Shown in pieces: positions 23,556-39,551 of a DNA stretch of 64,000 nucleotides (its first letter is position 1; the number at the start of each line of letters is the position of its first letter). The DNA is taken from NCBI GenBank assembly GCA_039096225.1, contig JBBPEB010000015.1:682001-746000 (forward strand), given 5' to 3'. Source of the DNA: Blastocystis sp. Blastoise (Eukaryota; Protista; Bigyra: Opalinata). The notes beneath the pieces are model-generated. The model saw only the letters and a program-made list of their open reading frames with translations. It was not told the DNA's origin and made no database searches. The translations under genes and the position numbers were made by a program.

Positions 23556-23664
23556 CCTTAATCTTTATTTCTTACAAGAATAAGTGATAGTATTGAAAGA
23601 AAAGATTATCGAAATTATACAGGATTATTGTCGTATTTGACGACATTTTTTGAGGTTTTTTAAA

Positions 23665-23718
23665 GAGATAATTCATACTCAGCATAGTATTGTTGAAAAC
23701 TTGATAGTCAGCATAGTG
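23665..23718 (+). repeat. Left TIR
   Basis: GAGATAATTCATACTCAGCATAGTATT (27/27 match to the reverse complement of the right end) followed by AAAACTTGA.AGTCAGCATAGTG. Confidence 0.95.
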
Positions 23719-25095
23719 GTGTGGGGAATATTTTTCATACCGATAGTATCTGACTACTGTAAATAATTACGGGGGAAAAATTAATAAATAGAAATATGTG
23801 ACTCTAATATATATGCATATATAGTATATCTATATGTATATAATATATAATATATTCACATATACCTCATATTGATGAATATTTTCTCAATTAACGTTTA
23901 ACAAGATTATCAATTGATGCTAATTCTGGATAAAAGGTATATATTCAGCATATAAATGAAGATAAGACTAATATCCAACAAAGGGTAATTTTAAAATGGA
24001 CTAGTAAGCATTTTATAAAATGGATTCATTTACTAAAATCAAGAATTCTCTAGAGAACGTTCTTGTCTTAGTCTAATTGCAATTGATTTCTATAAAATGA
24101 TATATATAATAAAATATCAGTATGAGTATGATAAGAATGGCTGATTTCTTTAGATATTTGAATAGAGTTGATATTATTATGTAATTATTTTTTACATAAC
24201 TTATATATATATAATATATGTTGACTTAGCATCTTTGATTCATTTTAAGCCACATTAATGTAATTGTCCTTTGTAGCAGTTAGAATTTTTAATAGCATGT
24301 TTGTATTTATATATCTTATTATAAAAAGTTTTCATTAACCTATCAATAATAAATAATGTTACTACAAAGAGAACCACATAATGAATGCATTATGAGCTTA
24401 GAAACGTTAATAGCTATGTGTTATCAATTATTTATTGATTATAAAAATACATTTTGATCATATAAACCACATTTTATATGTATTGAGTAATTTATACGAA
24501 ATCTAATTAACGGATATATTTAACAAAACTCTTTTATATACACTTAAATGTTAGTGTAATATGTGATATACAATAAAAAAGAACTTCGAACTTTATTCAG
24601 AATTTTATTAGTTGTGTAGTATTCACGCATCTTAGTGCAGTAAAACAATGATGTGTTGTAATTAGAATAAAAAAACAAATTATTATAATAATTATGGTAA
24701 ATATAGTATTATAACACCTATAGAAATATAAAGAATATTCCTATAATAAAATAGTATAGTTGTTAAAATATTTTTGTTTATATATATTAAAAACAATTTA
24801 TATAATAAATTTCCAAGAAGTCAAATAACATAATTTGTTGAAATCAATACATATATATATTATAAGATAGAACGTTATTGAAAAAAGAAAAAAGAAAGTA
24901 TATAAAACTTTAGAGAAAGTACATTAGATAATGAAATAGTGAAAGAAGAACTGTTAGTATTCATCAATATTCAGGGATATAAATATAAATATAATACCAA
25001 ATATATCATTAATTATCTTTATAGAGACATAGGCTACAAAGAAATAAAAATTTGAAAGAGTTTTAGTAATAGACGTAGAGCTCTTTATATATGTT

Positions 25096-25360
25096 ATAAT
25101 AATAATAATAATAATAATAATAATAATAATAATAATAATAATAATAATAATAATAATAATAATAATAATAATAATAATAATAATAATAATAATAATAATA
25201 ATAATAATAATAATAATAATAATAATAATAATAATAATAATAATAATAATAATAATAATAATAATAATAATAATAATAATAATAATAATAATAATAATAA
25301 TAATAATAATAATAATAATAATAATAATAATAATAATAATAATAATAATAATAATAATAA
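25096..25360. repeat. (AAT)n microsatellite inside the MULE
   Basis: Direct. Confidence 0.95.
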
Positions 25361-36600: not shown

Positions 36601-38755
36601 ATCATATAATTGATAAAATGCTTGATTATAAGTATTTATATTGTTAATACCCTCAATTATTTGAGGGATAAAACTATAAGAATTATCATTTGCAGTAAAG
36701 AAGGAAGTGACAGAGTAATATATTTGATTATAGTTTAGATTAGGAAATAGAAGCTTAATATCATTTATCGTATCTTTTATAGTCATAGATCTGTACTTTT
36801 TGTGACATTCAAGATAGCAAGATACAAAAGTAGAATTAAGAGGATCCTTAAAGATGTTCTTGGTACTTTTATCAACATATGCAATGTTTACACTATCTTT
36901 TAGATTATTAATTAACTTCTGAAAATCTTCAAATGAAACCGTTCTAATTGAATTATCTACATCATTTAAAGATCGTTTATTTAATGCGTTAGCTAATAAT
37001 TGATTTTCATCATCATTAAAACCTATATATGTATATATATATAATTATATTACTAGTAATAGTATTAATATACCTTTTATATTATTTAGTGTACCTATAG
37101 TATCATTATTCATAATATCATCGTTGGAAATTGTATTCACAAGATTATTATTAGTATTAGTGTTAGAAGTATCATTATTATTATTAGTAATGGAATTATA
37201 ACCATTATTAGTATTAGAAGTATCATTATTAGTATTAGAAGTATCATTATTAGTAGTATTCAAAGTATTATTATTAGTAATAGAATTATAACCATTATTA
37301 GTATTATTAGTATTCAAAGTATTATTATTAGTAACAGAATTATTAGTAGTAATAGAATTATAACCATTATTAGTATTAGAAGTATAACCATTATTAGTAT
37401 TAGAAGCATCATTATTAGTAGTATTCAAAGTATTATTATTAGTATCGTCGTTATTAGTAATAGAATTATAACAATTATTAGTATTAGAAGTATCATTATT
37501 ATTATTAGTATAATCATTATTATTAGTATAATCATTATTAGTATAATTATTGTTAGTATCATTATTATTATTAGTATAATCATTATTAGCAGGAATATAA
37601 TCATTAGTACTCATATTCATGTAAGTATTATCATTCATAGTATCTTCATTATCACTATTATCATAATCCATATATAAATTATATATTTCATTATTCTTCA
37701 CTGAAGGTTCGTATTGTTTTCTCATTCGTTCCATAGTATCATCAATAAATGAAGATATGAATACTTTGTTTGCTTCATTATCATTCAAAGAATTAATTAT
37801 TCTTTCTTCTTCTGGAGTAAATTTTTCTTCTAAAATATCTTCTTCATAAATATTTTGTTCGCTATTCATTAGTAATATATTAGAGGAATTAATATTTTTA
37901 TTTAAATTTGAAATTATACCTTTATAATCAGAAGATGAAGTAATCTCTCTAGTATCATTAAAATTCATAGTATCTTTTGGACTATCATTAGATACTATAA
38001 TGTTTGTATTTTCTGACTGGAGCAATTTCCAAAAATAATTATACACGGATTTTCTAATTCTATTTCCATTCAAAATTTCAATATAATTTGTTATAATTTT
38101 TGAGCACTTCTATATCAGAATACATTCGTAATGATAAAAAATAATGTATTATAACTTTAATAAAAGAATAAAAAGTAAATGACAAGTAAATGATTAAGTA
38201 TTAAATAAAAAAAAATGTTTAAATATATATATATATACATCTGTATCGTGATTGTGAAAATGGGTAATGTTGAAAGAACCATCATGATAAGTGTACTGGA
38301 CAACGAAATTACATTCCATGATCGGACAAATAAAACGTATCGTTGTTTTGTTACTTCTTTCTATAAGTAATGAGTAACCGTTTACATGGGACCAGAGTCT
38401 AATGAATGATTCCACTTCTGGTCTTGAATTGAATGTCTGACAAATGTTGAACCTCTTATAAAGACCGATGTTTCTTCCAATTATAAATGGATATGCCATG
38501 CTTTTTGTAAAGAAACCATTAAAATCATTTTCTTTTATAAGTGACTCGACATTCATTGCTTGCTTTTTCGAAAATCTATTAGCTGTTGCTTTTGTTAATT
38601 GATTTATTGTTATGTTGCTTTGTTTATGTCTCTAAAGAATCGATAAAACCATTTTTAAAACATACTGTCAGCATTTCCGGGATGTGAGCCTTGTACTGCT
38701 CTAAATCTTCTGTTTTTATGTCATCTATGATCTTGTCTAGGTCAAAGTCTGACAT
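33683..38755 (-). CDS. MULE (MuDR-family) DDE transposase with N-terminal zinc-finger DNA-binding domain and SWIM finger; 6 exons, ~1069 aa
   Basis: Exons 38755-38666, 38631-38239, 38109-37074, 37022-36396, 35745-34890 and 33890-33683 total 3210 nt, all GT-AG, frame open. Motifs: FNSRPEV..RFICPIMECNF..HNH, IFLDGTF, FMSDQAKG, HILCFFHL, VAESYN, CSC..CKH, RGKP. Confidence 0.93.
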
Positions 38756-38911
38756 TTTTGTATATATTTAATAATACAAGCAAAATAATTAAGAATTCAA
38801 TTTTGCCTCTTTAATTGTTGAAAAAGAACAATGATTATTTTATTTGATTTTTGTATTATAAAAACATTGCCGAATTGTTATTAACCCCGTGGGACAGTCG
38901 TCTATGTTTTT

Positions 38912-38966
38912 CACTATGCTGACTCTCAAGTTTTTATATAATACTATGCTGAGTATGAATTATCTC
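38912..38966 (-). repeat. Right TIR
   Basis: Reverse complement reads GAGATAATTCATACTCAGCATAGTATTATATAAAAACTTGAGAGTCAGCATAGTG. Confidence 0.95.
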
Positions 38967-39551
38967 GTTTTTTAAAGCGAATATTCCACGGTTATTCCAT
39001 TTTAAAACTTTCATTTTCAATTAATTGTGTCGAATATGTGTTTTTACTTCAATTGCATAGTAATTTTAAAGTTGTTATATCTAATTAATTTACTAAAACT
39101 TATTTATGTGTTGGTTCACTATGGAGTTCATGAATTTCTATTCTAGAGTATAGCCAACCAAGTTTTTATCTGCATTACTCCTTTTTTATAATGAGTATTG
39201 GCGAGAAGAATTCTCATAATGTCTTGTTGATTCTGTTTTTAAGTGAATTTTGAAAATACTATTTAGAATTCTGAGACTTTAAAAGAGTTTACAAATTTAT
39301 GAACAATGAATCCATTTAGTAAAGATAAATTATATTGATAATATAGTAATTAACAAATACAAACAAAAAATATAATTACAAAAATGCAAATTTTAGGTAA
39401 TCAAAAAATAAAGAGAGATTATGTTTTCGTAGAATAAGAAAAAAGCCATGATTAACATGAATATATGAAAAAAAGATGAGGAACAGCAAAATCCTCATTT
39501 AAAAAAACTATATATTTGCTATAAAAAGAATTATATATAGGAAATAATAAA

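Follow-up and report, generated by a model that had tools for sequence, protein, structure and literature searches.

A recently mobile, probably autonomous Mutator-like element carrying one captured Pol5 fragment in Blastocystis

The capture of gene fragments by Mutator-like elements (MULEs) has mostly been studied in plants, where the capturing elements, Pack-MULEs, are defined as transposase-less (PMC6446971). PMC6431247 includes the statement that Pack-MULEs are mostly 1-2 kb long, with none larger than 7 kb in Jiang et al. 2004. Host-derived inserts are not new in autonomous MULEs, as KAONASHI/VANDAL MULEs carry a transduplicated ULP1 (PMC13317346) and Jittery-group MULEs of Chondrus carry "various inserts, potentially host derived" (PMC6446971). 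The latter survey, which includes stramenopile groups, does not mention Blastocystis, and the Blastocystis genome paper (PMC12129017) does not mention MULEs. Here we describe a MULE of 15,302 bp at positions 23665-38966 of a 64,000-nucleotide stretch (hereafter the window; contig JBBPEB010000015.1, positions 682,001 to 746,000) of the Blastocystis sp. Blastoise genome. The assembly consists of 34 contigs (33.34 Mb, about 23% GC) built from nanopore R9 reads, and its contigs are referred to in shorthand as C2, C5, C18, C20 and so on. An earlier sequence-only reading of the window had taken the element for a potentially autonomous Pack-MULE that moves multi-kb genomic cargo.

Our analysis makes it quite likely that the element represents an autonomous MULE family of about 15-16 kb, that its one capture, a now decaying piece of Pol5, preceded the split of its copies, and that the intron differences among these copies and the donor are polishing errors. 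This places fragment capture by a MULE in a gut-dwelling stramenopile, and in an element whose transposase gene is retained and whose 15-16 kb were mobilised very recently as one unit.

One unit at three unrelated sites

The terminal inverted repeats (TIRs) of the element are perfect over 27 bp and then remain similar to about 52-54 bp, with one 1-nt indel and few mismatches, and each contains the motif TCAGCATAGT twice. They are bordered by an exact 10-bp target site duplication (TSD), and a match of this length between flanks at fixed sites has a chance probability of about 1.5e-5 given the local composition. In a search of the whole assembly, the exact TIR occurs six times, and these occurrences form three pairs. 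The second pair bounds a copy of 16,144 bp on C18 (314,642-330,785, TSD AGGGTCTAAA) and the third a copy of 15,380 bp on C20 (857,985-873,364, TSD GAAGAAACCC), both of which are full-length and colinear with the window copy. All three insertions have an exact 10-bp TSD, each different, and lie in unrelated flanks, and homology among the copies stops exactly at the TIRs. Substitution divergence from the window copy is 0.06% for C20 and 0.7% for C18. Because the two additional low-divergence copies have different TSDs and unrelated flanks, the element is inserted whole and recently at three unrelated sites.

These results bear out the termini given by the sequence-only reading (TIRs of about 54 bp with 27 bp perfect, a 15,302-bp unit and an exact 10-bp TSD) as well as its proposal that the whole unit was mobilised as one. 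A nearer partner for either TIR, which would have undermined that proposal, does not exist among the six exact TIRs. The expectation that a TIR search would reveal further copies with different TSDs and different cargo held for the TSDs, but every copy carries the same cargo rather than a varied one. A misassembly, or a segmental duplication with terminal repeats arising by chance, might be entertained given a simple-repeat-rich interior and an assembly made from nanopore R9 reads. However, three different TSDs in unrelated flanks, with homology ending exactly at the TIRs, refute this explanation, and we regard its probability as negligible. A mis-join of the element likewise appears very unlikely, because three colinear copies sit on three contigs.

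At these three sites, host start codons lie 110, 114 and 182 bp downstream of the element. Mu elements have a known preference for the 5′ ends of genes, and the distances fit this preference. A promoter-targeting element with such a large natural capacity could seed genetic tools for Blastocystis. In addition, a family of TIR-related ends is present at C5:307545-307686 and about 18 other sites, with identical ends and the same doubled motif; on C5 the related ends face each other, 142 bp apart. These are probably miniature inverted-repeat transposable elements moved by this or a related transposase.

Transposase, captured fragment and remaining interior

As the sequence-only reading had described, an open six-exon transposase gene lies at one end of the element. 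Its six minus-strand exons, separated by five GT-AG introns, form an open frame of 1,069 amino acids (Table 1). The frame is open in all three copies, with 1,069 amino acids in the window and C20 and 1,244 in C18, where the Asn/Thr repeat is expanded in frame by 525 nt. Database searches were performed exon by exon, and the joined model was used solely to check the frame. Exon 5 matches Pfam families MULE (PF10551, 4e-12), PF00872 (2e-6) and SWIM (4e-5), and all Atlas matches of the transposase are MULE or SWIM. For exon 2, which has no Pfam match, the Atlas lead is PF03108 at a score of 0.90, under the recognition threshold. A search of the PDB gave only a weak match to a bacterial Mutator transposase, and a length-limited search, uninformative on full-length kin, gave no relatives beyond the element's own genome at E 1e-10. 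Outside the repeat, three synonymous changes and one altered codon separate the window and C18 transposases, whereas neutral expectation is about 14 non-synonymous changes. Because the catalytic motifs are complete, the frame is open in every copy and amino acid changes are few, the element probably encodes its own functional transposase, in line with the sequence-only reading.

Related transposases with open frames form at least four additional groups in this genome, and those that are readable share the last exon. A point against autonomy is that such families could supply the enzyme in trans, in which case the element would be non-autonomous in practice, with an intact but silent transposase and a sister MULE family acting on its ends. 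Apart from the several sister families with open frames, this scenario draws on the fact that no expression has been located for the element's own transposase; the RNA runs contain 15-40% of the sampled words of 30180-36790, a stretch that includes more than the transposase gene. However, the sister families are only 30-60% identical to the element in exon 5, their ends fail to match the TIR at up to three mismatches, and amino acid conservation between the copies exceeds the neutral prediction. We therefore give mobilisation in trans little credence and favour an element that acts through its own transposase.

MULE transposase groups are found on C14, C16, C18, C19, C20, C25, C26, C8, C13, C23 and C31. 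Several groups other than the one described here contain copies of identical score, and the MULE copies on C16 and C19 are 99.97% identical across 3.7 kb. By their sequences, MULEs appear to be very recently active genome-wide. On C15, two divergently oriented exon-2 homologues of identical score lie 8 kb apart, at 101043-101411 (minus strand) and 109473-109841 (plus strand), and are perhaps an inverted duplication or a composite element.

The interior outside the transposase gene measures 10.0 kb, in agreement with the approximately 10 kb of non-transposase DNA estimated earlier. The host-gene fragment recognised within it by the sequence-only reading comes from Pol5/MYBBP1A, which is an essential, single-copy gene on C2 (about 213,070-218,615, minus strand; Pfam DNA_pol_phi, 6e-24). 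Donor-matching DNA extends over about 27,660-29,614 (~2 kb), corresponds to the middle of the gene and differs from the donor by 3.1% in exons. At one end, the match to the donor starts with the GT of an intron, and at the other it stops within a different intron. The fragment was captured as DNA, as indicated by its retained ancestral introns, and this occurred once, before the three copies split. Since both capture junctions now carry (AAT)n runs in AT-rich introns, the Pol5 DNA may plausibly have been acquired by template switching at simple-repeat microhomology while a break in the element was being repaired. The acidic tract of the fragment is frameshifted in every copy, a K-to-stop nonsense codon is present in those of the window and C20, and the changes since the copies split (about eight non-synonymous or nonsense versus four synonymous) are near-neutral. 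For these reasons, the fragment is best described as a decaying passenger pseudogene. Conversion of the C18 fragment by the host gene was considered and rejected, as host-like and element-like bases interleave and ordinary descent fits. The NCBI models of the fragment skip the frameshift via a short intron in the acidic tract (window 28770-28800 region). Separately, Pol5 mRNA in one RNA run comprises two alleles, with five differences in 112 nt, which is consistent with a heterozygous diploid or a second strain.

Low-complexity matches aside, the remaining three segments of the interior have counterparts in the three copies only. For these ~8 kb, a genome DNA search that skipped common words, and from which old or repeat-rich donors may escape, found no donor. 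Nine interior frames had no Pfam match at E up to 10, and the interior had no Rfam match. Tandem or simple repeats make up a quarter of the interior. A second gene or an internal relic TIR was rejected, as there is no Pfam or Rfam match and no match to the TIR pattern inside. The other ~8 kb are most simply viewed as old element-specific DNA with repeat expansion.

These observations bear on the proposal that the element is an autonomous Pack-MULE that transports about 10 kb of genomic cargo and thereby serves to duplicate and shuffle genes. One genuine capture speaks for it, as do the annotation by NCBI of all three fragment copies as hypothetical protein genes (WA158_001078 in the window) and the presence of part of the interior in RNA libraries. 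On the other hand, a donor was found for only ~2 of the 10 kb, so that "multi-kb genomic cargo" overstates what was captured, and the remaining ~8 kb lack Pfam and Rfam matches as well. The idea of a shuffling system fares no better, given that the same single internal fragment occupies every copy, frameshifted, with a stop in two and near-neutral change, and that no chimeric or full-length gene is present. Large-cargo shuffling is thus an improbable account of the element, and an autonomous MULE with one decaying capture is preferred.

Table 1. Positions of element features in the window
Feature	Position	Strand
Left 10-bp TSD, GTTTTTTAAA	23655..23664	+
Left TIR, 27 bp perfect, ~54 bp in total, TCAGCATAGT twice	23665..23718	+
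Element-specific AT-rich DNA, matches only the three copies, no donor or gene found	23719..25095	
(AAT)n run	25096..25408	
Element-specific AT-rich DNA, no donor or gene found	25409..27437	
3′ capture junction, Pol5 intron start into (AAT)n/(AAGTATAAT)n run	27438..27686	-
Captured internal Pol5/MYBBP1A fragment	27687..29317	-
5′ capture junction, first captured intron with (AAT)n expansion	29318..29614	-
Element-specific DNA lacking a donor and Pfam or Rfam matches	29615..32790	
AT-rich satellite downstream of transposase	32791..33682	+
Transposase exon 6, basic C-terminus, ~52% identity in sister families	33683..33890	-
Transposase exon 5, D764, CxxH 785-788, W852, E860, SWIM finger	34890..35745	-
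Transposase exon 4, first catalytic D (700)	36396..37022	-
Transposase exon 3, Asn/Thr-rich repeat	37074..38109	-
Transposase exon 2, C-x4-C-x18-H-x-H finger, weakly MuDR DNA-binding-domain-like	38239..38631	-
Transposase exon 1, ATG at 38755	38666..38755	-
Right TIR	38913..38966	-
Right 10-bp TSD, GTTTTTTAAA	38967..38976	+

Intron differences among the copies and the donor

Nine exact GT-AG segments are variably present among the three copies and the donor, six in the cargo and three on the plus strand at 32.8-33.7 kb. Four cargo introns are present in all copies and not in the donor, one is present in the window and C20 only, and one in C20 only, where the window copy is without the intron plus 10 nt to the next AG. 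In the window, the cargo introns lie at about 29157-29210, 29072-29112, 28897-28988, 27988-28038 and 27877-27917, and all of these are absent from the assembled donor. Among the plus-strand segments, 33551-33597 and 33642-33695 are absent from C18, while a 55-nt segment at 32790/32791 is present in C18 only and occurs just once in the genome. All but one of the nine missing introns measure 41-56 nt, as compared to a median of about 108 nt for predicted introns, a noisy set. A distant Blastocystis-type orthologue (GCA_019973095.1), read by hand, shares all six cargo introns in both position and phase, and the three copies combined keep 10 of the 10 intron positions common to it. Because the orthologue has introns at all six positions, the cargo differences appear to be losses, with the element keeping the ancestral structure. 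Intron gain or Introners are rejected by these outgroup introns and by the single-copy C18-only segment; the main text of PMC9860276 reports no Introners in Blastocystis.

The plus-strand GT-AG segments (window 32791-33695) lie opposite the transposase. Under either explanation discussed below, their variation between copies implies that an antisense transcript covering the 3′ end of the transposase gene is spliced. One of them overlaps the transposase stop codon, altering the last residues in C18.

We consider it very likely that the intron differences are errors introduced by spliced RNA reads during short-read polishing of the assembly. This explanation is favoured because splice-site bases have been replaced by the base of the spliced mRNA. 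In the donor gene, one intron starts with GA, as compared to GT in the element, and the next exon starts with GA; at this intron, 58 nt are removed in two RNA runs. Similarly, intron 1 of an FKBP gene (window 8781-8880, plus strand) reads GG...CT, and all three of its odd bases are the spliced-mRNA base, while a cargo intron in C20 ends with AA, the same as the upstream exon. Scanning for motifs of overwritten splice sites gave noisy output with few clean cases, and the argument is thus based on these three unselected cases. Further candidate introns with an odd base copying the adjacent exon, at predicted boundaries, are found in L068 (minus strand, ~2370), L049 (~2194) and L042 (~1499), with AC acceptors and a CT donor. 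Spliced reads overwrite splice-site bases in short-read polishers; our literature search found no paper on spliced reads corrupting short-read polishing. In a rough scoring model, 150-nt reads open gaps of the size of the missing introns and hardly longer ones, which agrees with the apparent upper size limit of about 58 nt if a short-read aligner opened the gaps.

Several observations weigh against a polishing artefact. DNA reads are the only polishing input given in the published methods (PMC12129017), the window and C20 copies agree at four of the five copy-variable intron sites, as inheritance predicts, and many short introns persist in expressed genes. The alternative is real loss, in which RNA- or cDNA-templated repair would have deleted short introns and overwritten splice sites in a very recent burst, leaving the element as a structural fossil. 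Consistent with this, all events end exactly at GT-AG, the six cargo events are losses by outgroup, and one absence is common to the window and C20. The window copy without the intron plus 10 nt to the next AG shows no microhomology, and the C18-only intron is single-copy in the genome and hence no Introner. There is also a precedent, as PMC12065846 includes a description of RNA-templated whole-intron deletion in human cells. However, real loss faces a paradox of rate, in that 10 of 10 introns were kept since the split from the distant Blastocystis and 6 of 10 were then lost in the donor within about 3% divergence, with zero losses on the stem of the element. It also leaves unspliceable-looking ends that copy the mRNA junction in intact housekeeping genes, and the ~58-nt ceiling fits gap opening by a short-read aligner under the rough scoring model. 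Taken together, real loss is unlikely, and polishing error remains the preferred explanation.

Both explanations have consequences beyond this element. A polishing defect likely affects the whole assembly, and it would bias intron counts, intron lengths and claims of "non-canonical splicing" drawn from this genome. Real loss, if true, would be a much larger finding on how introns are lost, as short introns would be deleted even from antisense transcripts inside transposons. In that case, the captured fragment would limit the age of the burst to ~3% divergence, and the mechanism would be directly testable in culture.

Classification and comparison with known systems

The element has the hallmarks of the MULE superfamily, namely a DDE transposase with CxxH and a conserved W, TIRs, a TSD within the 8-11 bp range and, at its three sites, a location near gene 5′ ends, and its transposase frame is intact in all copies, as in autonomous MULEs. 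With Pack-MULEs it shares a host gene fragment with an identifiable donor and capture at the DNA level, but it has neither lost its transposase nor acquired varied, multi-locus cargo under shared TIRs. Because the definition of a Pack-MULE requires loss of the transposase, the element is outside that definition, and the label given by the sequence-only reading is contradicted by an intact transposase in every copy. As judged from sequence comparisons, it is probably a young autonomous MULE with one transduplicated pseudogene fragment. By analogy with MULE biochemistry, its DDE transposase would bind the TIRs and cut and paste the unit, and copy number would rise via gap repair or replication timing.

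Two other features of the window lie outside the element. The minus strand at 39552-44843 encodes two tandem cation-efflux-like paralogues whose intron positions partly differ, and the minus strand at 49271-53947 carries a Ser/Pro/Thr-rich open frame of 4.7 kb that has no introns, in a genome that is otherwise dense in them.

Among described systems, autonomous MULEs of the MuDR/Jittery/Hop type, stramenopile groups among them (PMC6446971), resemble the Blastocystis element in combining a MULE and SWIM DDE transposase with TIRs, an 8-11 bp TSD and insertion close to the 5′ ends of genes. The Blastocystis element differs from them in its size of 15-16 kb, in its short TIRs (~54 bp) and in a transposase with five introns and an Asn/Thr repeat. 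Much of the size consists of AT-rich DNA, long introns and repeats, as elsewhere in the genome. Rice and maize Pack-MULEs likewise hold a decaying, intron-containing host gene fragment between TIRs (transduplication), whereas the element described here retains its transposase, is about twice the 7-kb maximum given for rice and has one capture only. Introners share the exact presence or absence of introns between near-identical sequences, but the outgroup shows the cargo differences in Blastocystis to be losses, and the one intron tested occurs only once in the genome. Finally, KAONASHI/VANDAL and Chondrus MULEs are alike in encoding a transposase together with host-derived sequence; in KAONASHI, however, the captured domain is conserved and resides in non-TIR elements, whereas the Blastocystis capture took place recently, has a traceable donor and is decaying.

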